A model generated the notes under the pieces. That model was not told the DNA's origin. It ran no database searches and saw only the letters and a list, made by a program, of their open reading frames with translations. Positions 17,941 through 38,922 of a stretch of DNA of 64,000 bases are shown here, piece after piece (position 1 is the first letter of the stretch; every line of letters starts with the position of its first letter). The translations under genes were made by a program, and so were the position numbers. The stretch is from Paramoeba atlantica (taxonomy: Eukaryota; Protista; Discosea): assembly GCA_977017575.1 (NCBI GenBank), contig CDRNVI010000164.1, forward strand, positions 124,001 to 188,000, given 5' to 3'.

Positions 17941-18624
17941 TTTTTCACAACACAATTCCCAATTTGAGCGACAACAAACAAGTAAATTGACAAAAAAAGA
18001 AAAAAAATCTTTCAAATCTGAAAAAGAAAGATCAACAAGAGACCAAAGATTAAAAAGAAAAAAGACAAACAATTCGAAAAGAGATGAGAGAAAAGCCAAT
18101 CACACCAAGTTCCTCGTTTTCAAAGGCAAGGACCAAAGGAAAAGAAACAGATGATGCTGGAGAGAGAGAGAGATTGGAATTAGATAATGGGAGAGAAAGA
18201 AAGAAAGAGAATGTCAGTGAGACACAAAAGATTAAAAAAAATAAAGACAAACAATTTGAACAACAACACAATTTGTGAAGGAGAGAAAGAGAGAAGAGAC
18301 CCAAAACACAAAAACCGAAAACGTAAAAAAAGGAGAAAGAAAAAGGAGAAAGTGAAAGTGCTTAATTTGGGGCGCTTTTTTTCATTTCATTTTCATTTTC
18401 ATTTTTTGGTGGAAATTGGAAGAAAGTGATCGACTTTTCTTTCTTTTCTCTTTTATGTTATTTGATTGAAAAGGTGACTGAGAGAAGAAAAAGGTAGGTT
18501 CTTTTTTCATCCTCTCAACGAAAGAGAATTTATTCTATTAATTTATTTTTATTTGAATGAAAGAAAAGAATGTGAACTTTTTCGACTTGAAAAGAGAGAG
18601 AGAGGGTGAGTCAATGGAAAAGCA

Positions 18625-19663
18625 CTATGCAGCAAGAGTCACTGAAGTTGTTGGGACTTTCTGAGAAGAAGACTTATTTTTGGAAAACAAAGTCTTCTTC
18701 ATCTTTTCTTCAAGTTTTTGGTCTTCTTTTGCATCTTCTTTTCCCCACTTTTCAGCATTCCTCATCGCAATAGTTGTTGTAACCCACTCCCATGCCTGAA
18801 ATGAAAATCCATTTCAACATCACCAAAACAAAGAAACAAAGAATCAAAAAACAAAAAACAAAACAAAAACAAAAACAAAACCTCTGGAAGAACTTGAGAA
18901 TGTTCAGCAAGGGTTCCAGTGTGAACACTAATTTGAAGAAGATCTTCTGTAAGATTGGGGAGGAAATTGACTTCTGATATCCTTCAAAACATGAAAAGGT
19001 CGGTCAAACCACAGAAACATTTTTGAAAATCAAAAAACAAAAGACCAAATAAAAAAAAAAGAAAAAGGTAAAACCTCAAATTGTTATTTTACGATATGGG
19101 TTGTCAAGATAACATGAATCACAATCAACCAAAATAGGTTTGTTTGAGAGATCAAGACCAACAAGAATATCTTCAAGACAAAAAAAACCTTGATGATTTT
19201 TACTTTTAAAAGGGAATCGTGATAATAAAAAGAGAAAAGATTCTTTTGGAGAGGAAAAGATTTTTTCCAAAAGGGTTCAAATTCAGAGAGAAAAGAAAAA
19301 GAAAAAGGGGAAAAAAAGGAAACCATAGTCATCCAAATGAAAAATCACTGCATCAGATTGTTCCTTCTCGACCACCAACATGAAAAATTTTTGCAGTCAT
19401 TGTAGCAGAGGTGTATTCTTCATCTCCTGTCCAAAATATTTAGACTCATTTTTTTTGAATATCAGAGAGTCAAAAATCATATTGTTGAGAATATCGATGG
19501 CCAATCACTGCGATTTGGATCTGAAAAGGAAGAAGAATTAAGTTGTGTAAAGATTTTGAAAAAAAGAAAGAAAAAAGAAAAAAAAAAGGAAAAAAAAAAC
19601 CTTCTTATCTCGATATGTTTCTTTCATAACCCTTCCATAAGCATGGCTCATCATGGACCCCAT
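18625..19663 (-). pseudogene. Arf-like pseudogene copy 2 (internal deletions)
   Basis: Exon 1 MGSMMSHAYGR at 19663; IQIAVIGHRYSQ; deletions in exons 2-3; retains LEDILVGLDLSNKPILV and the last exon. Confidence 0.6.
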
Positions 19664-20034
19664 TCTTCTCAAAATACAAAGACAGTTCTTTCGAGAATTG
19701 AACAAAAAAAGAAATCGCAACAAAAAATGAAGAAACAAAGTTTCACAAGTTTGTTGAAATCCGTTTTTGAGAACCAAATTCGAAAAAAAATAGATTCTCT
19801 TCAGTCCAAGTTCGAAAATTAAATTCTCTTTGAAATCTAAAAAATACCAAAATTAAATTCTCAAAAAAAAAATAACAAAAAATAACAAAAGAAAACAAAA
19901 AAAAAAGATAAAAAAATAGAAAAGAGTCAAGAAAGTTAAGAAATGGTTTTTCAAAAAGGGACTGTCAACCTCGAAATTCCTCATTGACTCAATGATTCAA
20001 ACCAAGGAGAAAATGGAGTACAAGCAACAAAAAA

Positions 20035-20420
20035 ATGAAGAGAATGCCAACAATGATTAAAGAGACAAAAAGATCCTTCTATCGCATCCGAAAAGTAATT
20101 CATTCAGCCTTGGAAGTCAAAGTTTTTGGCAGGAAATTGCGTTGTACCTCGATGATGTATTGCATTGCGAAGTGGACTCAAGGAAAGTGGGGGAGAGAGA
20201 AAGAGGGAGAAAGAGTTTCTCAAAAGTGATCAAGATATTCATACATGAAGCAGAGGGGATCTTAACCTTAAAGTCTTTGGAGAGGGGGGTTTAGGGTGGA
20301 GAAGTCTGTTTTTCTGTTTCTTAAAAAAAAGAAGAGCAGTTTGCTTCACACCTCTTCAAAAAAATTAGATTTTGGGTTTTTTTTTATCAAAATGAACAAT
20401 AAAATATCAACCTCTCTTTG
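20035..20420 (+). pseudogene. ORF X relic
   Basis: MKRMPTMIKETKRSFYRIRK..., frameshifted homolog of 2062-2448. Confidence 0.4.
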
Positions 20421-20905
20421 TTAAACGTTCAACATTTGTTCCTTTTTCCAAGAACAGTTCACAAGTTTGTTGAGATCCATTTGGAGAACCAAATTCGAAA
20501 AAAAGAAATTCGCTCCAGTCCTGAAGAGAAAAGAAAAAATATTAAAAAATTAAATTCAAAAAAGAAATTAACAAAATAAAGAAGAATGAAGAACCTATAA
20601 AATAAAGAAAGGAATTCCCAGAATCGTGGTCATATCCACAAGTGAACTGATTTTTGATCTGAATGGTGGTGTATAATATTCACAACTTTTCCACAGAATA
20701 AACTATCATTTTTTACAGCTTGATTTGGATCTGGAAGAAGAGATAAGTTGTGAAATTTTGGAAAGAGAAAGGAACAAACTTTCACCTTTCATTCATGTTC
20801 CCTTTTCTCATTGTCCAATACCAAAAAGAAGAAAAGAAACCAAAAAGAAAATGGTGAATTGGAGTTGGCGGATCAACCTAACTTTGCAAAAGATTGACAA
20901 GAAAT

Positions 20906-20976
20906 GCGCCGGTGGTTCAGTGGTAGAATTCTCGCCTGCCACGCGGGAGGCCCGGGTTCGATTCCCGGCCGGCGCA
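20906..20976 (+). tRNA. tRNA-Gly(GCC)
   Basis: Identical 71-nt gene; oligo-T terminator. Confidence 0.97.
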
Positions 20977-21345
20977 ACTTTTTTTTTCTTCTTCTCAACT
21001 CAACCTTTTTTTTTGTTTTAATTTCATGGTGAAGAAGGGTCCCAATCTAAAAACCAACCTCTCTTTTGGAGATCACCTTTTTGTTCCTGTTCAAATTCCC
21101 TCAGTTGTTGATCTCCATTTTGGAGAACCAAATCGCATGATTCTTGAAAATCAAAAATCAGAGAGAGAGATCAGAAAAAAGAAAGAGAAAGAAAACCACA
21201 CAACCTAAAATTTCCCAGGACTCTCTCCAAAACTTCAAAGGGGCCGGGGTGTTTGCACGAAAAGTTGTTCCAAACAAATTCAACCAAAAAAATAAAAATT
21301 CACCATTTGGATTTCTCATTGAGTTAGAACTTAAGAAGAATCTCA

Positions 21346-23549
21346 TCATTTCCACAATTGAACTGATTTTTGATCTGGTTCTGAAACTAAAACTGAACCA
21401 GATGAATGAATTCCAATCCCAAAAGGATTCTTCATCTTCCCAAATCCAAAAGAAAAAAGAAAAGTTCCATCTTTCTCAAACACACTCACTCTCCCATTTC
21501 CCCAATCACCAACAATAATTCGACCATTCCCATCAACATCAACACCTCTTGGAGTCTTCAATTGAGAATCTTTTGATCCTCTTTCTCCAAAAGTTCAAAT
21601 AAAGTTTCCTTCAATTCCCATCACTTGAATTCGATGATTCCAAGTATCTGAAATAACAAGATTACCATCTCCATCAACAACTACACCACAAGGACGGTTA
21701 AATTGACCTTCAGAAGAACCACGAATCCCAAAACATTGAATAAAACATCCATCATAACTAAACACTTGAATTCGATGATTCTCAGTGTCAACAACAATAA
21801 TTCTACCTTCTTCATCAACATCAATCCCACGTGGTTTGTTGAATTGACCAGGTTGAGAACCTTCACATCCAAATGATCTTATCAAACTACCTTCTTTGTT
21901 CAACACCATCACTTTTGATTGTAGTTGGTAAAGACCAACAATCTCATCATTCAACCCAATTGCAACATCAATAAAAGTTCCATCAACTTTGAGAGTTTGA
22001 ATCAAAGATCCTTCTTTGTTTCTAATTCCTAACTTCCTTTCTTCACAACAAACAATAAAGTTACCATCAATGTTCTCAACAATTCCCCAAGGTTTTTCAT
22101 CACAACAAAATGAAGAAATAAATTCCATTCGATCACCAATCACTCCTTTCTTTTTTCGATTCAAAAGTGAAACATCAAGTTCATCAATAAGATCATTTGC
22201 AATTTGAAGAAATGTTGAAAAGAGATCTTCATCAAAAAGAGAATCAGTTGTTGGAGTTTGAGACAATCTAAGAATTGTATCACACCTCATTCTCAAATCA
22301 ACTTTCTCTAAATCTAAATCTTTCTTCATCACTTTCTTGTTCATTAATTTCTCTTCTAATTCTTGAATCTCTTGTTCTACTTTTCTTGTTTCCTTTTCAA
22401 CAAACTCCAATCTCTTTTCCAATCCAACTCCAATCTTCAAAATCTCATTCCTCTTTCTCAAAACACTCTTTTCTAACGAATAAACATTTTGTTGATGTTC
22501 ACCATGAATTTCAAGAACACAATTCATACAAACAAAAAGAGAACACTCAAAACAAAACCCACTCAAATTCTCAGATGGGTGAGTTAAACAATGTTTCTTC
22601 TTCAAACTTTCTAATCCCCCATCATTCTCATGTTGTTGGTTTCTTCTTCCTTCTTGTTGTTGGTTTTGTTGGTTTTCACGTTTGTGGTTTCGAGAGAAAG
22701 GATTGGAGGAATGAGATTGTTCACAAGAATCACAAATGAAAACTTTGCAGTCAGAACAATACATTGAAGTTTGTTCTCCACACTTTCCGAAATTCGCACA
22801 TTTTTTTGTTTCATCTGTTTACTTTGTTAATGAGGGGGTATTTTCTTTGTGTTTGTTGTTTGTGGAACAATTGTTTTGTGGTGGGGTGAGTGTGAGGTGA
22901 ATTGTTTCATTTGAAAACACAAAGAAAAAGAAAGGAAAGAAAAACATGGAGTTGGAGGAAGACAGAAAGAAGGAATCTTTGAAGATTCAATCACATCAAT
23001 TGTTTCAGGAATTAAATAATTGGAATCAAATGATTCAATTGTCTCACATCTTCCTCCTCCTTCTCCTTCAATCTCTTTTCGACAAACTGGACAACATCTC
23101 TTCTTCTTCCCACCATCACTCAAACAACAACTTGAACTAGAAGAAGAAGAAGAAGAAGAAGAACCATCGACTTGAAGAGGAGAAAGAAAAAGATTGGGAC
23201 CACCATCACCGCTGCCACCACCACCACCACCACCACCATCACCACTCTCAGAAGTTGAAGTTGAAGTTGAAATTTGTTGAGAGGAGAAGAAGAGTTTGTT
23301 GAGACAATCAGAACAAAAAGAGTGGCCACAAGGTAATGATCTCGGTTCTCTTTCCCATCTCATCATTTCAAAACAAATCAAACATTCAAACCCTCTCCTT
23401 TCTTCACACTCTTTCCTTTCTGTTTCTTCTTCTTCTTCTTTTCCTTTTTCAATTAACTTCTCTTCCTTGGTCTTTTCTCCCTCCTTCTCTCCCTTCTTTC
23501 TCTTTTTCTCTTCTCCTTGTTCAGTTTTCACTTGTTTCCTCTTTCCCAT
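21346..23549 (-). pseudogene. TRIM-NHL copy D with a premature stop in the NHL domain
   Basis: GNFI-TGA at 21595-21597 where the other copies have CGA (R); frame otherwise intact to 21346; intron 22815-22945. Confidence 0.88.
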
Positions 23550-23879
23550 TTTTCCACAAGAGTATCCCCAATTTTGGTAACAACAAAAAACAATTCAAAA
23601 CAACAGAAAGAAGAGGAGAAGGTCACCACAAACAACAAACAACAAACAACAAACAACAAACAACAAACAAACAAAAAAGCTAAATTTGGGTCTCTTTTTT
23701 TTCATCTTTCATTTATTTTGGGTTGAAAGAGAGAACATTCATATTCTCTGAATGTTGGTGTGTTGAGTCCTGGAAATGGATCCATTTGAAAAAGAAGAGA
23801 ACTTTCAATTTGAATCTTCAATTATTTGAATGTTGAAAAAGTGAATGGTTTTTACAATCTCAATGTTTTTGTTTTTAAG

Positions 23880-24430
23880 ATTTGATATTTCCATCACCAA
23901 AGGGAAAAACATTTGAGGGGAGATGGGTTTTTTAAGAAGAGAAAGGAGAGTTATCAAGCAGCTGTACAAAGACTCCTCGTCAACCAGATTTGTAAGAGAG
24001 AGGTTTTGAGAGATCACCAAAGTCAAGACAAGAAGAGAAGGAAATCCTTGTGGATGTGTGGTGGCTGGTGAGAGGTGGGAGACATTATTATTGAACCAGG
24101 TCTCCTCCAACAAGGACAACAAGGATTAAAAAGACAAAAAGATCCTCAATCGCATCCGAAAAGCAATTCGTTCAGTCTTGGGAGCTGAAGTTTTTGACAA
24201 GAACCATCCAATCAACATAGTGCAAGAAATTGAGTTGCAGAATTCTGGAGGGAAAGAAGAGTTTTTGATCTTTCAGAGAGGTCGGAGGAGAGAGACTCAG
24301 TATGCAAAAGTGGTGGAGAGAGAGGAAGAGGGAGAAAGTGTTTCTCAAAAGTGATCAAGATATTCATACATGAAGCGGAGGGGATCTTAACCTTAAAGTC
24401 TTTGGGGAGAGGATGGAAGAGGTGTCAGTT
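23880..24430 (+). pseudogene. ORF X relic, long form
   Basis: Translates piecewise to RRVIKQLYKDSSS..KILNRIRKAIRSVLGAEVFDKNHPINIVQEIEL..LIFQRG with stops and frameshifts; boundaries approximate. Confidence 0.4.
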
Positions 24431-25223
24431 TTTCTTGTTTCTTAAAAAAGAAAAGGAGTTTGCTTCACACTTCTTGAAAAAGATTTTAGATTTTGGTTTT
24501 TTTTTATCAAAATGATGAACAATAAAATATCAACCTCTCTTTGTTAAACATTCAACATTTGTTCCTTTTTCCAAGAAAAGTTCACAAGTTTGTTGAGATC
24601 CATTTAGAGAACCAAATTCGAAAAAAAGAGCAGTCCTGAAGAGAAAAGAAAAAAGATTCAAAAAGAAAAATCAGTATATTATTTGTTGAAATAAAGAAAA
24701 GAAAAGAAACCTGATTGGTCTCAAATAAGAAGGAGTCTCATTTCCCCCCCCCCCCAATTTCGAGAAATGAAATTATCTTTGAATTCCTTCTTCAAAAAAT
24801 TAAATTAAATTCAAAAAAAGAAATTAAGAAAATCAAGAAAAAAGAATGAAGAACCAATAAAATTAAGAAAGGAATTCTCAGAATCCAAATCTTCTCATAC
24901 AGGTTGTGAAATCTAAAAAACATCAAAGATCAAAATAACAAAAGAAAAGAAATCATTAAAAGAATAAAGAACAAACAAAAAAGATTTTAAAAAAATAGAA
25001 AAGAAGGAAAGAAAGTTCAAGACAACCTTGATATTTTTAAAACTCAAAGATTCCTTCTCAATAATTTTGCAAAACATCTGCGAGGTGTCGCTCAGCCAGA
25101 GAGAAGAAATATGAGAAAAGATTTCTTTGAACTAAAAAATTTAAAACCAAAAAGAAAATGAAGTGTTGTTGTTGAATTGGATTTGGCGGATCAACCTAAC
25201 TTTGCAAAAGATTGACAAGAAAT

Positions 25224-25294
25224 GCGCCGGTGGTTCAGTGGTAGAATTCTCGCCTGCCACGCGGGAGGCCCGGGTTCGATTCCCGGCCGGCGCA
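25224..25294 (+). tRNA. tRNA-Gly(GCC)
   Basis: Identical 71-nt gene; oligo-T terminator. Confidence 0.97.
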
Positions 25295-26093
25295 ACTTTT
25301 TTTTTTCTTCTTCCCAATTCAACCTTTTTTTTGTGTTTTAATTTTATGGTGAAGAAAGGTCCCAATCTAAAAACCAACCTCTCTTTTGGAGGGCACCTTT
25401 TTGTTCCTTGTTCAAATTCCCTCAGTTGTTGACCTTCATTTTGGATATTTTAGGTTCAACAAAAAGCTCATTTTTTCAAAAAACAGAGATTACCTTTTCT
25501 TTGATCTTTTTCTTTTCGCATCACCAATTCTTTTTGTTCCCAAGAAAAAGGAGTTTACACTTCACACTTCAAAAAAGAAATGAGAAAAAAAAAGTTTTTC
25601 AAAAAGAGAGAATAAAATGAACAACCTCTCTTTGTTTTTGAGAACCAAATTCGAAAAAAAGAGAAAAGAAAAAGGAAAAATATTCAAAAAAAATTGGTAT
25701 CATTTGATGAAATAAAGAAAAGAAGAGAAACCTGATTGCTCTAAAAAGAGAAGTATTTCCAACCAAGTTCAAGAAATTAAATTATCTTTGAAATCTAAAA
25801 AACTTCAAAATTAAATTCAAAATAAAGAACATCAACAGAAAAAAAAATAACAAAAGAAAAGAAAAATAAACAAATAGAAAATTAAAAAAAATAGAAAAAA
25901 GGAAAGAAAGTTTTCAAGACAACCTTGATATTTTCACTTGGAAAACTTTCTCAATAATTCTCCAAAACATCTCCGAGGTGTCACACACCCGAAATGTGAG
26001 AGTTGGAGAGAAAAATTCAACCAAAAAAAGAAAAAAGGTTTGGTTTGGTTAGTGACGAATTTTCTTCGACAGTTTGAAACTCAGGAAGAATGA

Positions 26094-28231
26094 TCATTTC
26101 CACAATTGAACTGATTTTTGATCTGGTTCTGAAACCAAAACTGAACCAGATGAATGTACACCAACCCCAAAAGGATTCTTCATCTTCCCAAATCCAAAAG
26201 AAAAAAGAAAAGTTCCATCTTTCTCAAACACACTCACTCTCCCATTTCCCCAATCACCAACAATAATTCGACCATTCCCATCAACATCAACACCTGTTGG
26301 ATTCTCCAATTGAGAATCTTTTGATCCTCTTTCTCCAAAAGTTCGAATAAAATTTCCTTCAATTCCCATCACTTGAATTCGATGATTCCAATTATCTGAA
26401 ATAACAAGATTACCATCTCCATCAACTACTACACCACAAGGACGGTTAAATTGATCTTCAGAAGAACCCTCAGTCCCAAAACATCGAATAAAACATCCAT
26501 CATAACTAAACACTTGAATTCGATGATTCAGAGTGTCAACAACAATAATTCGACCTTCTTCATCAACATCAATCCCACGTGGTTTGTTGAATTGACCAGG
26601 TTGAGAACCTTTACATCCAAATGATCTTATCAAACTACCTTCTTTGTTCAACACCATCACTTTCGATTCTACTTGGTAAAGACCAACAATCTCATCATTC
26701 AACCCAATTGCAACATCAATAAAAGTTCCATCAACTTTGAGAGTTTGAATCAAAGATCCTTCTTTGTTTCTAATTCCTAACTTCCTTTCATTATGACCAA
26801 CAATAAAGTTACCATCAATGTTCTCAACAATTCCCCAAGGTTTTTCATCACAACAAAATGAAGAAATAAATTCCATTCGATTACCAATCACTCCTTTCTT
26901 TTTTCGATTCAAAAGTGAAACATCAAGTTCATCAATAAGATCATTCGCAATTTGAAGAAAAGTTGAAAAGAGATCTTCATCGAAAAGAGAATCAGTTGTT
27001 GGAGTTTGAGATAATCTAAGAATTGTATCACACCTCATTCTCAAATCAACTTTCTCTAAATCTAAATCTTTCTTCATCACTTTCTTGTTCATTAATTTCT
27101 CTTCTAATTCTTGAATCTCTTGTTTTACTTTTCTTGTTTCCTTTTCAACAAACTCCAATCTCTTTTCCAATCCAACTCCAATCTTCAAAATCTCATTTCT
27201 CTTTCTCAAAACACTCTTTTCTAACGAATAAACATTCTGTTGATGTTCATTGTGAACCCCAAGAACACAATCCATACAAACAAAAAGAGAACACTCAAAA
27301 CAAAACCCACTCAAATTCTCAGATGGGTGAGTTAAACAGTGTTTCTTTTTCAAACTTTCTAATCCCTCATCATTCCCAAGTTGTTGGTTTTGTTGGTTTT
27401 CACGTTTGTGGTTTCGAGAGAAAGGATTGGAGGAATGAGATTGTTCACAAGAATCACAAATGAAAACTTCACATTTAGAACAATACATTGAAGTTCGTTC
27501 TCCACACTTTCTGAAATTCGCACATTCTTTCGTTTCATCTGTTTACTTTGTTAATGAGGGGGTATTTTCTTTGTGTTTGTTGTTTGTTGTTGTTTTGTGG
27601 TGAGGTGAATTGTTTCATTTGAAAACACAAAAGAAAAAGAAAGGAAAGAAAAACATGGAGTTGGAGGAATACAAAAAGAAGGAATCTTTGAAGATTCAAT
27701 CACATCAATCGTTTCAGGAATTAAATAATTGGAATCAAATGATCCAATTGTTTCACATCTTCCTCCTCCTTCTCCTTCAATCTCTTTTCGACAAACTGGA
27801 CAACATCTCTTCTTCTTTCCACCATCACTCAAACAACAACTTGAACTTGAAGAAGAAGAAGAAGAACCACCAACTTGAAGAGGAGAAAGAAAAAGATTGG
27901 GACCACCATCACCATCACCATCACCACTCTCAGAAGTTGAAGTTGAAGTTTGTTGAGAGGAGAAGAAGAGTTTGTTGAGACAATCAGAGCAAAAAGAGTG
28001 GCCACAAGGTAATGATCTCGGTTCTCTTTCCCATCTCATCATTTCAAAACAAATCAAACATTCAAATCCTCTCCTTTCTTCACACTCTTTCCTTTCTGTT
28101 TCTTCTTTTTCTTTTCCCTTTTCAACTAACTTCTCTTCCTTCTTTCTCTTGGTCTTTTCTCCCTTGTTCTCTCCCTTCTTTCTCTTTTTCTCTTCTCCTT
28201 GTTCAGTTTTCACTCGTTTCCTCTTTCCCAT
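26094..28231 (-). CDS. TRIM-NHL copy E
   Basis: Same architecture; intron 27539-27654; open frames. Confidence 0.93.
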
Positions 28232-28945
28232 TTTTTCACAACACAATTCCCAATTTTGGCACACAAACAACCAACACAAAAAATCGAATCCAAGTAAATT
28301 GACAAAAAAAGAAAAAAAATCTTTCAAATCTGAAAAAGAAAGATCAACAAGAGACCAAAGATTAAAAAGAAAAAAAACAAACAATTCAAAAAGAGATGAG
28401 AGAAAAGCCAATCATACCAAGTTCCTCGTTTTCAAAGGTAAGGGGACCAAAGGAAAGAAACAGATGATGCTGGAGAGAGAGAGAGATTGGAATTAGATAA
28501 TGGGGGAGAGAAAAAGAAAGAGAATGTCAGCGAGACCCAAAAGATCAAAAAAAATAAAAGACAAACAATTTGAACAACAACACAATTTGTGAAGGAGAGA
28601 AAGAGAAGAGACCCCAAAACACAAAAACCGAAAAAGGAGAAAGAAAAAGGAGAAAGAAAAAGGAGAAAGTGAAAGTGCTTAATTTGGGGCGCTTTTTTTT
28701 CATTTTCATTTTCATTTTCATTTTTTGGTGGAAATTGGAAGAAAGTGATCGACTTTTCTTTCTTTTCTCTTTTCTGTTGTTTGATTGAAAAGGTGACTGA
28801 GAGAAGAAAAAGGTAGGTTCTTTTTTCATCCTCTCAACGAAAGAGAATTTATTCCATTAATTTATTTTTATTTGAATGAAAGAAAAGAATGTGAACTTTT
28901 TCGAATTGAGAAGAGAGAGAGAGGGTGAGTCAATATGGAAAAGCA

Positions 28946-29962
28946 CTATGCAGCGAGAGCCATTGGAGTTGTTGAGACTTTCTGAGAAGAAGACTTATTT
29001 TTGGAAAACAAAGTCTTCTTCATCTTTTCTTCAAGTTTTTGGTCTTCTTTTGCATCTTCTTTTCCCCACTTTTCAGCATTCCTCATCGCAATAGTTGTTG
29101 TAACCCACTCCCATGCCTGAAATGAAAACCCATTTCAACATCACCAAAACAAAGAAACAAAGAATCAAAAAACAAAAAATAAAAAAAAACCTCTGGAAGA
29201 ACTTGAGAATGTTCAGCAAGGGTTCCAGTGTGAACACTAATTCGAAGAAGATCTTCTGTAAGATTGGGGAGGAAATTGACCTTGGTGATTTTTACTTTTA
29301 AAAGAGAATCGATAAAAAAAGAGAAAGGATTCTTTTGGAGAGGAAAAGAATTTTTCCAAAAGGGTTCAAATTCATCGAGAAGAAAAGAAAAAGGAAAAAA
29401 AGGGAACCATTGTCATCCAAATGAAAAATGACTGCATCAAATTGTTCAATTGCCTTCTGCCAAGAAGAATACACTCCCAAACCTTCTCGACCACCAACAT
29501 GAAAAATTTTTGCAGTCATTGTATCAGAGGTGTATTCTTCATCTCCTCTCCAAAATATTTAGACTCATTTTTATTGAAAAAAAAAAATAAGATCTCAAAA
29601 TAATTTTTTCAAACAAAAATTCAACAATGAAAATTTTAGTCTCTCCCAAAAATTGTTAATATGACAAAAAAAAAAATCAAACCAAAAATGTCCCCTTTCT
29701 CTTCCATTGCCTTTCTCTGTTGGTGTAAGTAAAGGCTGGTCGATTTGTATTTCACAACTCTCCAGAGAGTAAAATATCATATTTTTGAGAATATCAATGG
29801 CCAATCACTGCGATTTGGATCTGAAAAGGAAGAAGAATTAAATTGTGTAAAGATTTTGAAAAAAAGAAAGAAAAAAAAAAAAAAAGGAAAAACAAAAACC
29901 TTCTTATCTCGATATGTTTCTTTCATAACCCTTCCATAAGCATGGCTCATCATGGACCCCAT
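28946..29962 (-). pseudogene. Arf-like pseudogene copy 3; holds the empty site of the DNA transposon
   Basis: Exon 1 ATG at 29962; IQIAVIGH-TGA; intact KIFHVGGREGLGVYSSWQKAIEQFDAVIFHLDDN; a deletion at ~29281 removes the KPILV exon. Confidence 0.6.
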
Positions 29963-30336
29963 TCTTCTCAAAACACAAAGACAGTTCTTTTCGAGAATTG
30001 AACAAAAAAAGAAATCGCAACAAAAAAATGAAGAAACAAAGTTTCACAAGTTTGTTGAAATCCGTTTTTGAGAACCAAATTCGAAAAAAAAGAGATTCTC
30101 TTCAAGTCCAAGTTCGAAAATTAAATTCTCTTTGAAATCTAAAAAATACCAAAATTAAATTCTCAAAAAAAAAATAACAAAAAATAACAAAAGAAAACAA
30201 AAAAAAAAGATAAAAAAATAGAAAAGAGTCAAGAAAGTTAAGAAATGGTTTTTCAAAAAGGGACTGTCAACCTCGAAATTCCTTATTGACTCAATGATTC
30301 AAACCAAGGAGAGAGTGGAGTACAAGCAACAAAAAA

Positions 30337-30720
30337 ATGAAGAGAATGCCAACAATGATTAAAGAGACAAAAAGATCCTTCTATCGCATCCGAAAAGTAA
30401 TTCATTCAGCCTTGGAAGTCAAAGTTTTTGGCAGGAAATTGCGTTGTACCTCGATGATGTATTGCATTGCGAAGTGGACTCAAGGAAAGTGGGGGAGAGA
30501 GAAAGAGGGAGAAAGAGTTTCTCAAAAGTGATCAAGATATTCATACATGAAGCAGAGGGGATCTTAACCTTAAAGTCTTTGGAGAGGGGGGGGTTTAGGG
30601 TGGAGAAGTCTGTTTTTCTGTTTCTTAAAAAAAAGAAGAGCAGTTTGCTTCACACCTCTTCAAAAAAAATTAGATTTGGGTTTTTTTTTTATCAAAATGA
30701 ACAATAAAATATCAACCTCT
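30337..30720 (+). pseudogene. ORF X relic
   Basis: Near-identical to 20035-20420. Confidence 0.4.
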
Positions 30721-31206
30721 CTTTGTTAAACGTTTAACATTTGTTCCTTTTTCCAGGAACAGTTCACAAGTTTGTTGAGATCCATTTGGAGAACCAAATT
30801 CGAAAAAAAGAAATTCGACTGAAGAGAAAAGAAAAAATATTCAAAAATTAAATTCAAAAAAGAAATTAACAAAATAAAGAAAAAAGAATGAAGAACCAAT
30901 AAAATAAAGAAAGGAATTCTCAGAATCGTGGTCATATCCACAAGTGAACTGATTTTTGATCTGAATGGTGGTGTATAATATTCACAACTTTTCCACAGAA
31001 GAGACTATCATTTTTTACAGCTTGATTTGGATCTGGAAGAAGAGAAAAGTTGTGAAATTTGGAAAGAGAAAAGAACAAACTTTCACCTTTCATTCATGTT
31101 CCCTTTTCTCATTGTCCAATACCAAAAAGAAGAAAAGAAACCAAAAAGAAAATGGTGAATTGGAGTTGGCGGATCAACCTAACTTTGCAAAAGATTGACA
31201 AGAAAT

Positions 31207-31277
31207 GCGCCGGTGGTTCAGTGGTAGAATTCTCGCCTGCCACGCGGGAGGCCCGGGTTCGATTCCCGGCCGGCGCA
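31207..31277 (+). tRNA. tRNA-Gly(GCC)
   Basis: Identical 71-nt gene; oligo-T terminator. Confidence 0.97.
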
Positions 31278-31647
31278 ACTTTTTTTTTTCTTCTTCTCAA
31301 CTCAACCTTTTTTTTTGTTTTAATTTCATGGTGAAGAAGGGTCCCAATCTAAAAACCAACCTCTCTTTTGGAGATCACCTTTTTGTTCCTGTTCAAATTC
31401 CCTCAGTTGTTGATCTCCATTTTGGAGAACCAAATCGCATGATTCTTGAAAATCAAAAATCAGAGAGAGAGATCAGAAAAAAGAAAGAGAAAGAAAACCA
31501 CACAACCTAAAATTTCCCAGGACTCTCTCCAAAACTTCAAAGGGGCCGGGGTGTTTGCACGAAAAGTTGTTCCAAACAAATTCAACCAAAAAAATAAAAA
31601 TTCACCATTTGGATTTCTCATCGAGTTAGAACTTAAGAAGAATCTCA

Positions 31648-33858
31648 TCATTTCCACAATTGAACTGATTTTTGATCTGGTTCTGAAACTAAAACTGAAC
31701 CAGATGAATGAATTCCAATTCTTGAAGGATTCTTCATCTTCCCAAATCCAAAAGAAAAAAGAAAAGTTCCATCTTTCTCAAATACACTCACTCTCCCATT
31801 TCCCCAATCACCAACAATAATTCGACCATTCCCATCAACATCAACACCTCTTGGAGTCTTCAATTGAGAATCTTTTGATCCTCTTTCTCCAAAAGTTCGA
31901 ATAAAATTTCCTTCAATTCCCATCACTTGAATTCGATGATTCCAAGTATCTGAAATAACAAGATTACCATCTCCATCAACTACCACACAACAAGGACGGT
32001 TAAATTGACCTTCAGAAGAACCCTCAGTCCCAAAACATCGAATAAAACATCCATCATAACTAAACACTTGAATTCGATGATTCTCACTATCAACAACAAT
32101 AATTCTACCTTCTTCATCAACATCAATCCCATGTGGTTTGTTGAATTGACCAGGTTGAGAACCTTCACATCCAAATGATCTTATCAAACTACCTTCTTTG
32201 TTCAACACCATCACTTTCGATTTTGGTTGGTAAAGACCAACAATCTCATCATTCAACCCAATTGCAACATCAATAAAAGTTCCATCAACTTTGAGAGTTT
32301 GAATCAAAGATCCTTCTTTGTTTCTAATTCCTAACTCCCTTTCATTATGACAAACAATAAAGTTACCATCAATGTTCTCAACAATTCCCCAAGGTTTTTC
32401 ATCACAACAAAAGGAAGAAATAAATTCCATTCGATCACCAATCACTCCTTTCTTTTTTCGATTCAAAAGTGAAACATCAAGTTCATCAATAAGATCATTT
32501 GCAATTTGAAGAAAAGTTGAAAAGAGATCTTCATCGAAAAGAGAATCAGTTGTTGGAGTTTGAGACAATCTAAGAATTGTATCACACCTCATTCTCAAAT
32601 CAACTTTCTCTAAATCTAAATCTTTCTTCATCACTTTCTTGTTCATTAATTTCTCTTCTAATTCTTGAATCTCTTGTTCTACTTTTCTTGTTTCCTTTTC
32701 AACAAACTCCAATCTCTTTTCCAATCCAACTCCAATCTTCAAAATCTCATTCCTCTTTCTCAAAACACTCTTTTCTAACGAATAAACATTCTGTTGATGT
32801 TCACCATGAATTTCAAGAACACAATCCATACAAACAAAAAGAGAACACTCAAAACAAAACCCACTCAAATTCTCAGATGGGTGAGTTAAACAATGTTTCT
32901 TCTTCAAACTTTCTAATCCCCCATCATTCTCATGTTGTTGGTTTCTTCTTCCTTCTTGTTGTTGGTTTTGTTGGTTTTCACGTTTGTGGTTTCGAGAGAA
33001 AGGATTGGAGGAATGAGATTGTTCACAAGAATCACAAATGAAAACTTCACATTTAGAACAATACATTGAAGTTCGTTCTCCACACTTTCCGAAATTCGCA
33101 CATTTTTTTGTTTCATCTGTTTACTTTGTTAATGAGGGGGTATTTTCTTTGTGTTTGTGTTTGTTGTTTGTGGAACAATTGTTTTGTGGTGGGGTGAGTG
33201 TGAGGTGAATTGTTTCATTTGAAAACACAAAAGAAAAAGAAAGGAAAGAAAAACATGGAGTTGGAGGAAGACAGAAAGAAGGAATCTTTGAAGATTCAAT
33301 CACATCAATCGTTTCAGGAATTAAATAATTGGAATCAAATGATTTAATTGTCTCACATCTTCCTCCTCCTTCTCCTTCAATCTCTTTTCGACAAACTGGA
33401 CAACATCTCTTCTTCTTCCCACCATCACTCAAACAACAACTTGAACTAGAAGAAGAAGAAGAAGAAGAAGAACCATCGACTTGAAGAGGAGAAAGAAAAA
33501 GATTGGGACCACCATCACCGCTGCCACCACCACCACCACCACCACCATCACCACTCTCAGAAGTTGAAGTTGAAGTTGAAATTTGTTGAGAGGAGAAGAA
33601 GAGTTTGTTGAGACAATCAGAACAAAAAGAGTGGCCACAAGGTAATGATCTCGGTTCTCTTTCCCATCTCATCATTTCAAAACAAATCAAACATTCAAAC
33701 CCTCTCCTTTCTTCACACTCTTTCCTTTCTGTTTCTTCTTCTTCTTCTTTTCCTTTTTCAATTAACTTCTCTTCCTTGGTCTTTTCTCCCTCCTTCTCTC
33801 CCTTCTTTCTCTTTTTCTCTTCTCCTTGTTCAGTTTTCACTTGTTTCCTCTTTCCCAT
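31648..33858 (-). CDS. TRIM-NHL copy F
   Basis: Same architecture; intron 33117-33254; open frames; retrotransposon inserted ~125 bp upstream of the ATG. Confidence 0.92.
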
Positions 33859-33986
33859 TTTTCCACAAGAGTATCCCCAATTTTGGTAACAACAAAAAAC
33901 AATTCAAAACAACAGAAAGAAGAGGAGAAGGTCACCACAAACAACAAACAACAAACAACAAACAACAAACAACAAACAAACAAAAA

Positions 33987-34214
33987 TGAACCCTTCCCAC
34001 AAGGAGCACAGCTCCGAGTGGAGAAGGGAGTTTTTGCAGAAGAACAGTTTATTTCCTTTTAAGTGTTGTTTCTGTTAGGAAACAGTTTTGTGTCGAAAGA
34101 AGAAAGATTTGTGACTTCTCTTGTTTTTTCTGTCTTCCGCTTTCCTTCTGCCCTTTTCAATAGGCTGTGTTTTTTCCTCCCTTCTGCTTCCTCCCCACCT
34201 TTTCGTTCTTGCGC
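33987..34214 (+). repeat. Split direct repeat A1 (228 bp)
   Basis: Reads identical to 38476-38703. Confidence 0.95.
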
Positions 34215-34237
34215 AAGGTTACCTGTGCGTTTGTGGA

Positions 34238-34410
34238 TTGAGCGTTAAAATTCACGTCGTTGGTTGTTTGGTGGGTTGAGCGTCAAAATCCACATCGTTT
34301 GTTCGTTTGGTGAATTGAGCGTCAAAATTCACGTCGCTGGTTGTTTGGTGGGTTGAGCGTTAAAATCCACATCGTTTGTTCGTTTGGTGAATTGAGCGTT
34401 AAAATTCACA
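34238..34410 (+). repeat. Leader tandem repeat: alternating 38/39-bp units starting TTGAGCGT(T/C)AAAAT(T/C)CAC
   Basis: Four full units in a-b-a-b order plus a partial fifth that ends at the gag ATG. Confidence 0.9.
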
Positions 34411-35451
34411 ATGCCAACCAGGTCAGGGGGACCTCCCAGAGACGTGACAGTTCTTAGGAATTTATTCAAAGATAACCCGGTTTTAAACACATTGAAGACG
34501 TTCAAAAGACGAGAGCTCGACAATATTGTCGAGGAGCTTGGTCTGGAGCCACCAACAGCCCCCAACATTCAGAAGTTGGCAAAACTGGTGTTTGATGAAA
34601 GACAGAGGTTCCTACCTCAGACCGAGATAGTGCTGGCAGCAGATCTTCCACCCGCAGAGCCACCCACAGAACCACCAGGGGGTGTGTTGTGTGGCCGGAA
34701 TGGAATCCCAAGAACGGTGGGAGGCCTCACTGTCAGGGAGAACCCGCCTATAACACCCTACTCTCACCCAAGGGAAGACCCCCCTCAACAACCCAGGGGA
34801 GTTCCCAGAGTATCGACCATTGTGGTACCTGACCTAGAAGTGAGGGTGTCAGAGCTGCAACTCGTGAAGCAGAGGCTTCAGAGCTCGGCTGAGAAGCTGT
34901 TCCCTGACCCACCAACTTCCTACTCCACAAGAACAAGTGAGGAGGCCGCAATTCTAACACGTGCAGTACGGACATTGGCCATCTTACATGGATTGTTGGC
35001 AGGGGAAGGGGGGATGATGACCCCAACCCTGGTTGCAGAGGAAATCAGGGAGGTTCAACAGGACTTATGTCAGAGGTTGATCCAACTCGAGGTGTTCGAA
35101 AAGGAGGGATGGAGGGTCGCCAAGTGGGTAGCCACGAGCCAGGAATCTTTTATGGACTCAAAAATGGTTCAGGATCAGATGAAAGCGGCAAGGAAGACAG
35201 CTGCGATCGTGAAGGAGCCCAAGAAGAAGAAGGACGCCCCACCCAGATACGTGTGGGCGCAGCCCACCAACACTGGTTTTAACCCTTACCCTGCGACCCT
35301 GCCGCAGAATCAGTGGAAGCCACAACAACGGGTGTCCTTCACGCCATCGCCTCCGAAGGATATGTCAAAGATAATCTGTTTTAAGTGTCAGCAATATGGG
35401 CACTATAAATCACAATGTCCTGCGGCCCAGGGAGGCCAAGGGAAGCCATGA
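34411..35451 (+). CDS. Gag-like protein with C-terminal CCHC zinc knuckle
   Basis: CFKCQQYGHYKSQC; first ORF of the element. Confidence 0.88.
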   Translation: MPTRSGGPPRDVTVLRNLFKDNPVLNTLKTFKRRELDNIVEELGLEPPTAPNIQKLAKLVFDERQRFLPQTEIVLAADLPPAEPPTEPPGGVLCGRNGIPRTVGGLTVRENPPITPYSHPREDPPQQPRGVPRVSTIVVPDLEVRVSELQLVKQRLQSSAEKLFPDPPTSYSTRTSEEAAILTRAVRTLAILHGLLAGEGGMMTPTLVAEEIREVQQDLCQRLIQLEVFEKEGWRVAKWVATSQESFMDSKMVQDQMKAARKTAAIVKEPKKKKDAPPRYVWAQPTNTGFNPYPATLPQNQWKPQQRVSFTPSPPKDMSKIICFKCQQYGHYKSQCPAAQGGQGKP

Positions 35452-38390
35452 GTTATGAAAAGAGGTCGCGTTCTGGATCAAGTGTCTGGAACACATCCGA
35501 AGGGAGGCAAGTGCAGGAAGGTAACAGAAACACCAAGGGTGGTTGGGGCTCTAGCAGCAAAATGGGAGGAATGGCAGAAGGAAGGGGTCTCAGAATACTT
35601 GGTAAAAGCAGTCAAGGAGGGTTTGGATTTTGTACCGAGGGGTGCGCAACTTCTGGAAGGCTCGTTTGTTCAACCTTGGCCCCTGGAGAAAAAACAAGGC
35701 GACTGGATGTTAGCAGAGATAAAGAGGTTGGTGCGGGCAGGGAGTGTTATAGATCTGGGGGAGCAGGACTCCATGCCAGAGGAACTCAGCTTTGCGTCTC
35801 CAATGTTCCTCGTCCCCAAGGTTGGACCGAAGCTGTGGCGACTGGTCATAGACATGAGGACTCTCAACAGTGGGCTATTTCCCCCGAAGTTCAAGATGGA
35901 AAGGCTCGAGGAGATGGTTCGACTGACTGGCCCAGGGTGGTGGATGTTTACACTCGATCTCTGCGAGGGTTACTTCCATCAGGGTCTGTCGAAGCGAGCG
36001 AAGAAGTGGGCTGGAGCAGTTTTTCTAAACCCACTGACAGGAAAGAAACATTGGATCCAGTATCAAGTCCTCCCGTTTGGTCTCAATCTCTCCCCACATC
36101 ACTTCACAGAGCTGGTGAAACCACTCTTGAAGAGGTGGAGAAGGCAGGGGATAGTATGTATGGCTTACATCGACGATCTGGCTTTCGCAGCGAAATCAAA
36201 GGAAGAAGCTCTCAGAATCAGATTAATTGTGGCGGTGGATTTAAAGAGACTGGGTTGGGTCCGTCACCCAAAAAAGGGTCAATGGGAGCCAGCCCAGGTG
36301 GTGGAATACTTGGGTTTGGTTGTGGACCTGAGGGAAGGAAGATGGAGAATTCCCACAAAGAAGATTCAGTCACTAGTAAACCTCCTCGAAGCTGCGCTTG
36401 GGGGCCAGCAGGTGACAGCCAAGACACTTGCTCGCCTACTCGGGAAGATCTTATCACTCCAGAGAGCCATCCCTTTGGCAAAGCTGTACTCGAGGGAGAC
36501 CTTCAATGCAGTTCACGACGGGGGAGTTTATGTATGTGGGGATTGGAGGAGAACCATCCAATTACCAGAAACTGCAAGGAGCGAGCTGAGAGAGGTCCTC
36601 AAGCTAGTCAAGAGTGGCCTGGGAGCACCATTGTGGAGACCACCAGTGATGCAAGTTGTCACTGCCGACGCTTGTCCAAAGGGATGGGGTGGCCATTTAG
36701 AACCTCACCTTCAGCTACCACCAGCAGGGGGAGCCTTCAAACCCCACCTCTTGGATCTGGGAATAGAGATGAAGGAGGCCCTGGCTCTTTTGTACACTCT
36801 TCAGTCTTACACAGACCACCTGAGGGGAAGAAGCATTGCAGTAAGAACAGACAATATGTGGCTGGCAAGTTACCTCAGGAACGAGGGGGGCAATGGCTCG
36901 GCCCATCAGCGGAATCTCTCACGAATGGTCAAGGAGATATTCTTGTGGGCACTATCAAACGAGGCTATAATCGTAGATGTTCAGTGGCTCCCCTCCAAAG
37001 AGAACGTTCTGGCAGACGACATGTCCAGAGTCGAGGACCATGGGAACTGGAGGGTAGCAGACGAGGTTTTCCGAATTGCAGAAGAGAAATGGGGGCCTCA
37101 CACAGTGGACCGGATGGCCTCTGGGGAGAACAAAAAGTGCAAACGGTTCAACTCTTGGAGGTTCTGTCCAGGAGCGGAAGCGATCAACACATTCACAGTG
37201 GACTGGCTTGGGGAGAACAATTGGGTCGCCCCGCCACTCGCAATGATCCCATTGGTTCTGGACCACATTGCAAGGACAGGAGCAGTAGCAACCCTGTGTA
37301 TTCCAACCTGGAGAGCCATGTGGTCCCCTCTCCTAGACGAGATGCGGAGCGAAAGCATAATACTCCATCAAAGCCCAGCAGAGTTAACCACACCAGAAGC
37401 CAATGGGGGACAAGAAATACTAAAGAATCCACTTTGGAGGCTACAATTGGTCAGGGTAAAGGGCACCCGGAGGTGGACTGGGAGGAACTACTAAGAAAGG
37501 CTGAGCAACTGGCAGGTGCCTCGATCGCCCAATCAACTCATTTATCTTACTCCGCTGCGTTTGGCCTATTTGAGTCCTTTACCAAATCCTATGGAGCTCG
37601 AGCTCTGCCTGCTGCTGCAGACACAATTTTCTCTTTCATTGCCTGGTTAGAGGTTCAAGGAAAGGGAAGAAGGGTCCCACACCACATAGCAGCAGTGTCA
37701 TGGATGCATAAAAAGAAGGGCTTGACAGATTACACCAAGGCAGTCAAGGTCCAGATGGCACTCCAGGGAGTGGCGAGATGTGAGGCACAAGAAAAGATGG
37801 ACGTGCGAAGTCCTTTCCCTCTGGAAGCCTTGAAGAAATGGGTGGAGGGTACGCGTAAGACACATTCTGTGCGAGAGTTGAGGGATCCTGCAATTGTGGC
37901 CCTGGGGATCCGTTGCATGCGCAGACCTGGAGAACTTTGTGAACTCAAGGTGAGACACGTTAAGGAAGACGCTTGTGGCCTACGAGTTTTCCTGGCCAAG
38001 TCCAAGACAGACCAGACGATGACCGGGAAGTGGATGCACATCGATGCGGTCCCAGATTCTCCCACATGTCCAGTTTTATTGCTCAAGGGTTATCTGAACC
38101 AGAGAAAGAATTTGTCCCCAGAGCAGCCCTTGTTCGTCTCAGGGAAGGGGTTGGCAATGTCATCCTCAGGGATTTCCAGTGTGGTTAAGAACATGTGTAA
38201 GGCTGGGGGTTTCTTGGACAAGGTCTCGGGTCATAGCCTAAGGATTGCAGGTGCAACATTGGCTGTCAGGGGTGGACTTTCTATGGCTGAAATTTGCGCA
38301 ATTGGAGGATGGAAATCTGAAGCAGTGCTTCTTTACCTCAGGGACTGTGCTGCTGCACAGAGGGGTGCCTCCACTGCCATGGGATTTTGA
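35415..38390 (+). CDS. Tyrosine recombinase ORF (catalytic domain in roughly the last 300 aa; N-terminal part overlaps the RT ORF)
   Basis: R (CMRRPGEL), K (KSKTDQ), HxxR (GHSLRIAGA), GW..Y (IGGWKSEAVLLY); true start codon uncertain. Confidence 0.9.
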   Translation: MSCGPGRPREAMSYEKRSRSGSSVWNTSEGRQVQEGNRNTKGGWGSSSKMGGMAEGRGLRILGKSSQGGFGFCTEGCATSGRLVCSTLAPGEKTRRLDVSRDKEVGAGRECYRSGGAGLHARGTQLCVSNVPRPQGWTEAVATGHRHEDSQQWAISPEVQDGKARGDGSTDWPRVVDVYTRSLRGLLPSGSVEASEEVGWSSFSKPTDRKETLDPVSSPPVWSQSLPTSLHRAGETTLEEVEKAGDSMYGLHRRSGFRSEIKGRSSQNQINCGGGFKETGLGPSPKKGSMGASPGGGILGFGCGPEGRKMENSHKEDSVTSKPPRSCAWGPAGDSQDTCSPTREDLITPESHPFGKAVLEGDLQCSSRRGSLCMWGLEENHPITRNCKERAERGPQASQEWPGSTIVETTSDASCHCRRLSKGMGWPFRTSPSATTSRGSLQTPPLGSGNRDEGGPGSFVHSSVLHRPPEGKKHCSKNRQYVAGKLPQERGGQWLGPSAESLTNGQGDILVGTIKRGYNRRCSVAPLQRERSGRRHVQSRGPWELEGSRRGFPNCRREMGASHSGPDGLWGEQKVQTVQLLEVLSRSGSDQHIHSGLAWGEQLGRPATRNDPIGSGPHCKDRSSSNPVYSNLESHVVPSPRRDAERKHNTPSKPSRVNHTRSQWGTRNTKESTLEATIGQGKGHPEVDWEELLRKAEQLAGASIAQSTHLSYSAAFGLFESFTKSYGARALPAAADTIFSFIAWLEVQGKGRRVPHHIAAVSWMHKKKGLTDYTKAVKVQMALQGVARCEAQEKMDVRSPFPLEALKKWVEGTRKTHSVRELRDPAIVALGIRCMRRPGELCELKVRHVKEDACGLRVFLAKSKTDQTMTGKWMHIDAVPDSPTCPVLLLKGYLNQRKNLSPEQPLFVSGKGLAMSSSGISSVVKNMCKAGGFLDKVSGHSLRIAGATLAVRGGLSMAEICAIGGWKSEAVLLYLRDCAAAQRGASTAMGF
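35455..37494 (+). CDS. Reverse transcriptase - RNase H - Dam-like methyltransferase polyprotein
   Basis: RT motifs SPMFLVPK..WRLVIDMR, LDLCEGYFH, LPFGL..SP, AYIDD; RNase H VTADAC..GWG, EALA, TDN, ENVLADDMSR; DIRS-type MT HTVDRMAS..KCKRFNS..WLGENNWVAPP..IPTW. Confidence 0.93.
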   Translation: MKRGRVLDQVSGTHPKGGKCRKVTETPRVVGALAAKWEEWQKEGVSEYLVKAVKEGLDFVPRGAQLLEGSFVQPWPLEKKQGDWMLAEIKRLVRAGSVIDLGEQDSMPEELSFASPMFLVPKVGPKLWRLVIDMRTLNSGLFPPKFKMERLEEMVRLTGPGWWMFTLDLCEGYFHQGLSKRAKKWAGAVFLNPLTGKKHWIQYQVLPFGLNLSPHHFTELVKPLLKRWRRQGIVCMAYIDDLAFAAKSKEEALRIRLIVAVDLKRLGWVRHPKKGQWEPAQVVEYLGLVVDLREGRWRIPTKKIQSLVNLLEAALGGQQVTAKTLARLLGKILSLQRAIPLAKLYSRETFNAVHDGGVYVCGDWRRTIQLPETARSELREVLKLVKSGLGAPLWRPPVMQVVTADACPKGWGGHLEPHLQLPPAGGAFKPHLLDLGIEMKEALALLYTLQSYTDHLRGRSIAVRTDNMWLASYLRNEGGNGSAHQRNLSRMVKEIFLWALSNEAIIVDVQWLPSKENVLADDMSRVEDHGNWRVADEVFRIAEEKWGPHTVDRMASGENKKCKRFNSWRFCPGAEAINTFTVDWLGENNWVAPPLAMIPLVLDHIARTGAVATLCIPTWRAMWSPLLDEMRSESIILHQSPAELTTPEANGGQEILKNPLWRLQLVRVKGTRRWTGRNY

Positions 38391-38424
38391 TGGCTCTTTG
38401 CACTTTGCTGCGTCTTCTGGAGAT

Positions 38425-38471
38425 CCCGTGCATTCCATCTCTGCTTTCCTTTCCCCTTTGGTGATGACTCC
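38425..38471 (+). repeat. Split direct repeat B1 (47 bp), joined via AAAA to A2
   Basis: CCCGTGCATTCCATCTCTGCTTTCCTTTCCCCTTTGGTGATGACTCC is identical to 38932-38978. Confidence 0.95.
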
Positions 38472-38475
38472 AAAA

Positions 38476-38703: not shown

Positions 38704-38922
38704 CCCACCCGCCCACCCGTCAGCGTTTCGGGAGTTTGGGCAGTGGTCTTGTCAGCCTCGCCGTTCTCGACCAGTTTGTGTCTGCAGGGCTGTACAATGG
38801 GAGAGAAAAGACTATTTTGTCATGTTTAATGCAAGAAAGAGGGCGGGCGCTGTTTTGTATTGTTTTGATCGGATTATAAGGTGTTGTATCTGTTATAATT
38901 AGCTTTGAAAGTAACTTTATTT

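Follow-up and report, generated by a model that had tools for sequence, protein, structure and literature searches.

Organization of the array

The window analysed here, 64,000 nucleotides of Paramoeba atlantica DNA (GenBank assembly GCA_977017575.1, contig CDRNVI010000164.1, positions 124,001 to 188,000 of the forward strand), is a section of an array in which at least 14 close paralogs with RING, B-box, coiled-coil and NHL domains follow one another in tandem or lie on inverted arms. These genes carry the same loop variants in different combinations, and the resulting mosaics are very probably explained by non-allelic exchange between the paralogs. The assembly is eukaryote-like, with 45.7 Mb in 248 contigs and about 35% GC. 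A whole-genome search recovered at least 91 family matches, and nine members of the family (A to I) were located in the window by tblastn. The 14 close paralogs (Z, A to H, J, K, L, M, and N) have 87-100% protein identity to copy F and are all on the same contig, M and N having the lowest identity to F.

The genes share a common layout, a RING open reading frame (ORF) being followed by a T-rich spacer of about 60-150 nt, then by a 1.4-kb ORF covering B-box, coiled coil and NHL domain (Pfam). The RING and B-box/NHL exons were searched separately. In copy F (31651-33858, minus strand), the RING ORF (33124-33858) matched zf-RING_UBOX with E = 1.8e-8 and exceeded the curated cut-off of zf-C3HC4, and the second ORF (31651-33066) matched the B-box family PF00643 in two stretches (37 bits, for a cut-off of 24.1) and the NHL family PF01436 (E = 2.8e-25). 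The almost invariant residues from about 100 to 215, with a charged heptad-like sequence, form a putative coiled coil. The spacer contains stops or frame changes in most copies and is frame-shifted in B; in F (region 33070-33280, minus strand) both ORFs share the same frame with a single TAA between them, and in one relative (P0004) the spacer is fully open in frame. An intron with putative splice sites is likely and is the simplest reading, since the flanking ORFs evolve under constraint while the spacer accumulates stops and frame changes. The RING and B-box ORFs could even be separate genes if the organism trans-splices.

Copy A (3-458, plus strand) is represented by the C-terminal portion of its NHL exon because the window start cuts the gene; tblastn and the whole-genome search place the full gene in locus L011. 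Copy B (6172-8263, plus strand), with a RING ORF and its B-box/coiled-coil/NHL exon at 6842-8263, lies on the inverted arm. The following copies are all on the minus strand: C (15815-17940) and D (21349-23549), which are the duplication sisters of E (26097-28231) and F, respectively, G (42194-44243), flank sister of copy K located about 108 kb away on the same contig, H (47965-50113), 3'-flank sister of L, and I (60846-62730). Copy I is a divergent member with 49% identity to F and stands outside the exchange analysis.

The initial annotation had described D and F as sisters produced by a 10.3-kb duplication, and the flanks bear this out. The first copy of the duplication (15800-25100) holds C and D, and the second (about 26085-33986 plus 38979-40400) holds E and F. 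The two blocks aligned at an offset of 10.3 kb with 93-100% identity throughout, in patches, so that a two-gene duplication appears plausible from the alignment. C and E are a second sister pair of the same age as D and F, since the C/D block aligns to the E/F block over its whole length. The flanks of D and F matched at 97.9% (19463-23677 with 29763-33986) and at 97.2% (23674-24906 with 38979-40194). This homology is split by a DIRS-like retroelement (33987-38978, plus strand) that carries a CCHC gag, a reverse transcriptase/RNase H, a Dam-like methyltransferase domain and a tyrosine recombinase. The element, about 5 kb long and complete-looking, has 51% GC within a region of 35% GC and is inserted 128 nt upstream of the RING ORF of F. 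The same insertion was present in a contig of a second assembly (ctg2613l, see below).

D and F differed by 80 substitutions across 5.4 kb. Only three of them lay in the RING exon plus spacer, and the two RING exons are indeed nearly identical, as first reported. The 1416-nt B-box/coiled-coil/NHL exon contained 35, arranged in 15 clusters of 1-5 changes. The two copies differ at NHL loops, as had been noticed, but their B-boxes differ as well (SDCK in D vs SKCE in F). The K-to-E change (RKVEQEI) that had been taken as shared by this pair is present in both, but it was also found in A, K, M, and N and does not mark the pair. Silent divergence between the two exons was 13/286 sites vs 45/4000 sites in non-coding DNA, a fourfold excess (Fisher p = 8e-5). 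The differences private to D or F number 10, in about seven events, and correspond to 0.5-0.7%, which matches the flank divergence of 0.4-1.1%.

Copy D is a pseudogene because of a nonsense codon, TGA, at 21595-21597. The codon reads CGA in 12 of the remaining copies and CAA in N, and all other ORFs of the 14-copy alignment remain open. This CGA-to-TGA change occurred at a CpG and removes the last blade and a half of the propeller. D also has a private CGT-to-TGT change at alignment codon 242, in an allele resembling those of H and L, and these two CpG transitions hint at cytosine methylation or deamination in this genome. In blade 6 of F (31720-31724, minus strand), four bases out of five are changed (TTTGGG to TCAAGA, replacing FG by SR), and an exact 17-mer search of the assembly for a donor of this cluster matched only F itself. 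It could have arisen by multi-nucleotide mutation, or have been copied from a donor that is lost or unassembled, and it is the one feature that conversion from any assembled copy does not explain.

Shared states and the scale of exchange

The initial annotation had listed loop motifs distributed among the copies independently of the duplication history. We recovered every listed pattern in the 14-copy protein alignment, often with additional carriers. F shares KPHG and DSEN with G, and GTEG with G as part of a larger set (E, F, G, J, and N). KPRG is common to D and E and is also carried by A and L; GIRG is present in D, A, and B, and GDWG in D, E, F, and H. YQPKS is restricted to C and F. ENPT is shared by A and E across the inverted arms, as well as by Z. 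The copy nearest to F and to D changes between blades, as a comparison blade by blade confirmed: D and F are mutually nearest in the B-box, the coiled coil and blades 5-6, with a tie in blade 3, F is identical to C in blade 2, D is nearest to L and H in blade 1, and in blade 4 F has 2-3 differences from J and G vs 9 from D.

Exchange was analysed on the B-box/coiled-coil/NHL exon of the 14 copies, in a 475-codon alignment in which the stop of D was coded as X. Four sister pairs were defined by their flanks. D and F have 35 exon substitutions, 25 of which have both states in other copies (8/11 for silent ones); the corresponding numbers are 36 of 45 for C-E (9/12 silent), 26 of 33 for G-K (5/6 silent), and 31 of 34 for H-L (9/11 silent). 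Both states thus occur elsewhere in the family for 71-91% of the differences within pairs, and for 31/40 of the silent ones; for D-F, G-K, and H-L the states shared with paralogs exceed the private ones 2.5 to 10 times. Sisters diverging by mutation only should differ almost wholly by private states, so that this excess argues for exchange. Under a generous null model, which scores as a match every change that lands on a site polymorphic among the other copies, the binomial p-values ranged from 1e-14 to 1e-23 for all sites and from 1e-6 to 3e-4 for silent sites. Individual patches also match particular copies. The four changes of D in codons 5-7, one of them silent, correspond to Z, and the 14-site haplotype of L over codons 85-101 equals that of K. 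At alignment codon 351, CGT and GAG differ at all three bases and are each found in several other copies.

No single tree accounts for these data with little homoplasy. The best one required 368 steps for a minimum of 155, that is 213 extra steps and a consistency index (CI) of 0.42. Incompatible pairs made up 55% of the informative site pairs, vs 32% (maximum 39%) in 100 recombination-free simulations along the maximum-likelihood (ML) tree, for which the fitted rate heterogeneity (alpha 0.107) was very permissive. At silent third positions, taken from codons with an invariant amino acid, 56% of the pairs were incompatible vs 21-33% under four null models, and none of these models reached the observed value in any of 200 simulations. 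The pairwise homoplasy index (PHI) permutation test and the run-length test mentioned below were our own implementations. The former gave p <= 2e-4 both for nucleotides and for data collapsed to one character per codon, which removes within-codon coupling. In approximately unbiased (AU) tests, each of five exon segments rejected the trees of all other segments as well as the whole-exon tree. The partner of L was J/K in codons 1-100 (bootstrap 98) but H in codons 321-475 (bootstrap 96-99). D and F, which were united with a bootstrap of 100 in codons 401-475, formed no clade in codons 1-100.

The fraction of incompatible site pairs increased with the distance between sites, from 0.07 at 1-2 nt to 0.24 at 3-5 nt, 0.33 at 6-10 nt, and 0.46 at 11-20 nt, to reach about 0.5-0.6 beyond about 20-40 nt. 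With incompatibility low at short and high at longer distances, a loop motif of 3-4 codons tends to move as a unit and different loops are practically unlinked. Rebuilding each copy from the other 13 took 15-31 segments. Patches in the sister pairs had a minimum span of 1-48 nt, and the longest window identical to any candidate donor was mostly 50-280 nt, so the effective length of the exchanged stretches is short. The run-length test, written in the style of GENECONV, which the initial annotation had named as a check, gave p < 0.05 for 18/91 pairs. The best results were for the identical 3' tract of E and H (codons 410-475, p = 5e-4) and for C and F (codons 247-312, p = 0.002), the latter two being identical over codons 246-312, with YQPKS. 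A long event was also apparent in L, which combines the 3' flank and NHL part of H with the RING exon and B-box of J/K, the match to J/K covering codons 1-118.

Exchange reached across the inverted arms, the 5' end of D being equal to Z and E having a tract in common with Z, and across about 100 kb, between G/H and K/L. Sister differences in the B-box and coiled coil were mostly shared states too. The proposal that exchange shuffles loop variants is thus supported, but not as a loop-specific process, since the B-box, the coiled coil and the RING exon are affected too; exchange is generic along the gene, and the loops are where most of the differences lie and where selection keeps them.

A second public assembly of the same organism (ENA ERZ24900291), with different contig breaks, provided a further comparison. 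Its contig ctg2613l matched 13.5 kb of the window (23738-37243) at 99.87%, with no difference in the exon of F and, in that of E, no substitution and three indel columns. Two other contigs, ctg3632l and ctg3925l, were collinear with the window over 1-17.9 kb and 46.8-59.4 kb. They can be regarded as a second haplotype or strain, because of this collinearity and because their non-coding DNA was 0-1% diverged. The mosaics of this second haplotype or strain differ from those of the window. Copies in the same position differed at 51 exon sites for B (40 shared with paralogs), 23 for H (21 shared), 8 for A (7 shared), and 24 for J (22 shared). The divergence was concentrated in the genes, with 13-17 substitutions per 400 nt over B vs 0-5 in its surroundings, and 16 per 400 nt in the first blades of H (48385-48784) vs 0-2 nearby. 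The initial annotation had suggested searching other strains for new mosaics, and this expectation was partly borne out, by the four copies B, H, A, and J.

Next to H, the second haplotype carries a copy without a close counterpart in the window, its nearest relative being E at 56 differences. The haplotypes thus differ in copy content, suggesting unequal crossover or gene turnover. When positions 14900-21422 of ctg3925l (L034) were compared with 40300-46800 of the window, the gene beside H was not G-like and had 93% identity to the G unit.

Heterozygosity was patchy. Positions 12800-17200, with intergenic DNA and gene C, were identical to contig L031 or differed by a single base per 400 nt over about 4.4 kb, and the haplotypes around B were 1-4% diverged; the identical 4.4-kb stretch may be a haplotype block common to both contigs or a region that lost heterozygosity. 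At 3383-4602, an inserted segment of about 1.2 kb with an ORF (3495-4712, minus strand) for a DDE_Tnp_4 (PIF/Harbinger-type) transposase was absent from the collinear second-haplotype contig L031 and is thus a presence/absence polymorphism. Contig ctg3114l (L035), considered as a candidate for D in the second assembly, turned out to be a truncated B-like copy in another context. Elsewhere in the window, gene orientation alternates between 50 and 62 kb, unlike in long one-directional gene clusters, and the region 53753-57001 (minus strand) holds an ORF of 1082 amino acids that gave a weak HeH/LEM-like (SAP-type) match and contains long low-complexity tracts, some rich in Ser/Pro and others in Gly/Arg.

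Selection on the propeller face and the origin of the mosaics

We estimated the ratio of non-synonymous to synonymous substitution rates (dN/dS) from Nei-Gojobori counts. It was lowest in the coiled coil (0.26), followed by the B-box region (0.45) and the NHL region (0.95), where it rose to 4.25 at the 29 codons with three or more residues vs 0.43 elsewhere. The AlphaFold (AF2) model of the NHL domain of F had 24 strands, with a predicted local distance difference test score (pLDDT) of 92.6 and a predicted template modelling score (pTM) of 0.91. It matched the NHL crystal structures of Thin, TRIM71, TRIM2/3, and Brat with template modelling (TM) scores of 0.85-0.88 and 25-33% identity, the best matches being the domains of Thin, TRIM71, and TRIM2. 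For the structural mapping, from which D was omitted owing to its stop codon, we used a slightly wider range with 30 codons having three or more residues. Twenty-one of them belonged to d-a or b-c loops and 1 to an a-b or c-d loop, an enrichment in d-a and b-c loops with a Fisher p of 7e-5. Two others preceded the first strand, and of the 6 situated within strands, 5 were at an end next to the d-a or b-c loops. By propeller topology these two sets of loops are predicted to form one and the same face, which is the RNA-binding top face in the complexes of Brat and LIN-41.

Ectopic exchange is favoured because silent sites hitch-hike, codons differing at three bases are shared whole, segment trees reject one another and the mosaics of the second haplotype differ. 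It probably proceeds by ordinary homologous repair, with non-allelic, non-crossover gene conversion and occasional unequal crossover between copies, and it is plausible that no dedicated enzyme is required, as the initial annotation had proposed. Repair would repeatedly copy stretches from gene to gene, even when the two genes lie on opposite inverted arms or in sub-arrays separated by about 100 kb. The copied stretches would mostly be short, at most about 50-280 nt. As this is less than the distance from one loop to the next, the variants of different loops would reassort while the scaffold stays nearly uniform. Diversifying selection keeps about 30 codons variable, nearly all in the d-a/b-c loops on one face of the six-bladed propeller, and would then retain new combinations of the binding face. 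Pseudogene D may still act as a donor, and selection presumably favours new combinations. The combinatorial diversifier of the initial annotation is best understood as an evolutionary outcome that we infer from a dN/dS of about 4 at loop codons rather than as a demonstrated device.

Several observations weigh against this interpretation or narrow it. Both assemblies may derive from the same reads, so that finding F and E again in the second one is only partly independent evidence, and this assembly does not cover D. The orthology of the second-haplotype copies would follow from their collinear flanks only. The PHI test on the 27 silent informative sites alone was not significant (p = 0.23), and the tract length is therefore based mostly on non-silent sites; its bounds presuppose that the donor is among the sampled copies. 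The direction of transfer is unassignable without an outgroup.

Four other explanations were considered. In the absence of any exchange, the same variants could have arisen by parallel point substitution, with selection permitting few residues at each hypervariable position. The concentration of the variation in about 30 codons with a dN/dS of about 4 would fit this scenario, as would the extreme rate heterogeneity (alpha 0.11), with which more homoplasy is expected even without exchange. However, silent sites are equally reticulate, with their 56% of incompatible pairs reached by 0/200 simulations, 31/40 silent sister-pair differences are present in other copies, three-base codon alleles and haplotypes of 4-14 sites are shared whole, and incompatibility varies with distance, all of which makes parallel substitution extremely improbable. 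An assembly or polishing artefact, in which reads from paralogs 92-98% identical to each other would have been mixed into a chimeric consensus, is very unlikely as well. The copies are close enough for mis-mapping, but read mixing would tend to homogenise them and not to yield clean alternative haplotypes; the second assembly, despite its different contig breaks, has the exon of F exactly and that of E without substitutions within 13.5 kb at 99.87%, which speaks against the artefact that the initial annotation had foreseen as a possible refutation. Private features moreover distinguish D from F, namely a nonsense codon in the former, a DIRS insertion beside the latter and flanks diverged by about 1%, and all ORFs but that of D are open.

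A scenario with few long events, either unequal crossovers or kilobase conversions with patchy mismatch repair, appears unlikely, though less so than the previous two. The similarity of D and F would then reflect a recent long conversion that left unrepaired islands where the partners differed. L is a clear long chimera, with a 5' part from J/K (codons 1-118) and a 3' part and 3' flank from H, the identity of the 10.3-kb blocks is patchy at a scale of hundreds of bases, and the flank types upstream and downstream of the genes mismatch. Conversely, in the set of 14 copies, linkage is lost between sites tens of nucleotides apart, 15-31 donor segments are needed per copy, and different patches in D and F suggest different donors (Z, H/L, C, J/G, and E). 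Short and long modes probably both act, and this alternative is then a variant of the same mechanism. A dedicated diversifier (targeted hypermutation, retroelement-templated mutagenesis like that of diversity-generating retroelements (DGRs), or somatic cassette conversion into an expression site) might be evoked by the focus of the variation on one protein face, by the reverse-transcriptase element adjoining F and by the presence of pseudogene D in the array, reminiscent of the silent donors of cassette systems. It is scarcely credible, however. All bases are substituted, with a majority of transitions and no adenine specificity, the window contains neither a template repeat nor an extra cassette of NHL fragments, the B-box and coiled coil are exchanged too, and assemblies of germline type contain the differences in fixed form. 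The reverse transcriptase near F is part of a complete DIRS-like transposon. We thus rejected DGR-like or programmed mutagenesis on the substitution spectrum, the missing template repeat and the assignment of this reverse transcriptase to the DIRS-like element.

Beyond exchange by repair between paralogs, the array might be a self-renewing germline repertoire, with about 100 TRIM-NHL genes, pseudogene donors, conversion outpacing point mutation and new combinations arising within populations. We regard this as a tentative and rather doubtful extension. If true, a unicellular eukaryote would possess an innate combinatorial recognition system based on E3 ligases, comparable to the TRIM and NLR families of vertebrates.

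Comparison with known recognition families

The units of the array encode the same set of RING, B-box, putative coiled-coil and NHL domains as the TRIM-NHL proteins of animals (Thin/TRIM32, TRIM71/LIN-41, TRIM2/3, Brat, and Mei-P26). The animal genes, however, are conserved regulators present in a single or few copies, whereas the family has here at least 91 copies and a hypervariable face. A variable NHL propeller is remarkable in this respect, since the family is otherwise known for its conserved animal regulators.

Mosaic alleles created by short patches from paralogs are familiar from MHC, KIR, plant NLR clusters, and var/VSG genes, in which pseudogenes can donate and diversifying selection retains variants. 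The array resembles these families by its mosaic alleles due to interlocus gene conversion, and differs from them in that we found no evidence here of expression-site switching or somatic events. The combination of mosaics made by paralog conversion with diversifying selection is a hallmark of germline-encoded recognition families, including MHC, KIR, NLRs, and fish TRIMs.

The closest parallels come from fish. In the zebrafish NLR-B30.2 family, conversion tracts shorter than an exon have been proposed to combine positively selected substitutions into new variants (Howe et al., 2016, PMC4852459), and in the finTRIM genes a recombination point was detected by GARD in the B30.2 domain (van der Aa et al., 2009, PMC2657112). 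These families and the present one have in common large tandem arrangements, an invariant scaffold, positively selected loops in a C-terminal recognition domain, and gene conversion inside the recognition exon. They differ in that the variable module is here a six-bladed NHL propeller instead of a B30.2/SPRY domain, and the host a microbial eukaryote with a small genome instead of a vertebrate; any immune role would be hypothetical here. For CLPTM1 of this host, the best full-length matches to named species had 23-28% identity. Our evidence for exchange moreover includes silent sites and the comparison of two haplotypes. With another variable module and such a host, our results suggest that the shuffling of one variable face on an otherwise uniform scaffold evolved independently on a different fold. 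In the library searched, no paper joined TRIM-NHL proteins, expansion and gene conversion.

The locus is tractable, since its four dated sister pairs and two haplotypes make it possible to measure the rate of conversion vs mutation and to estimate tract lengths. It also carries a warning, as trees, orthology calls and selection tests based on site models can be trusted in this family only if recombination is taken into account. Specialists of gene families would find little surprise in the mechanism, but the system is a clean and tractable case; already known from immune-type families, it is new for the NHL domain and for this host.

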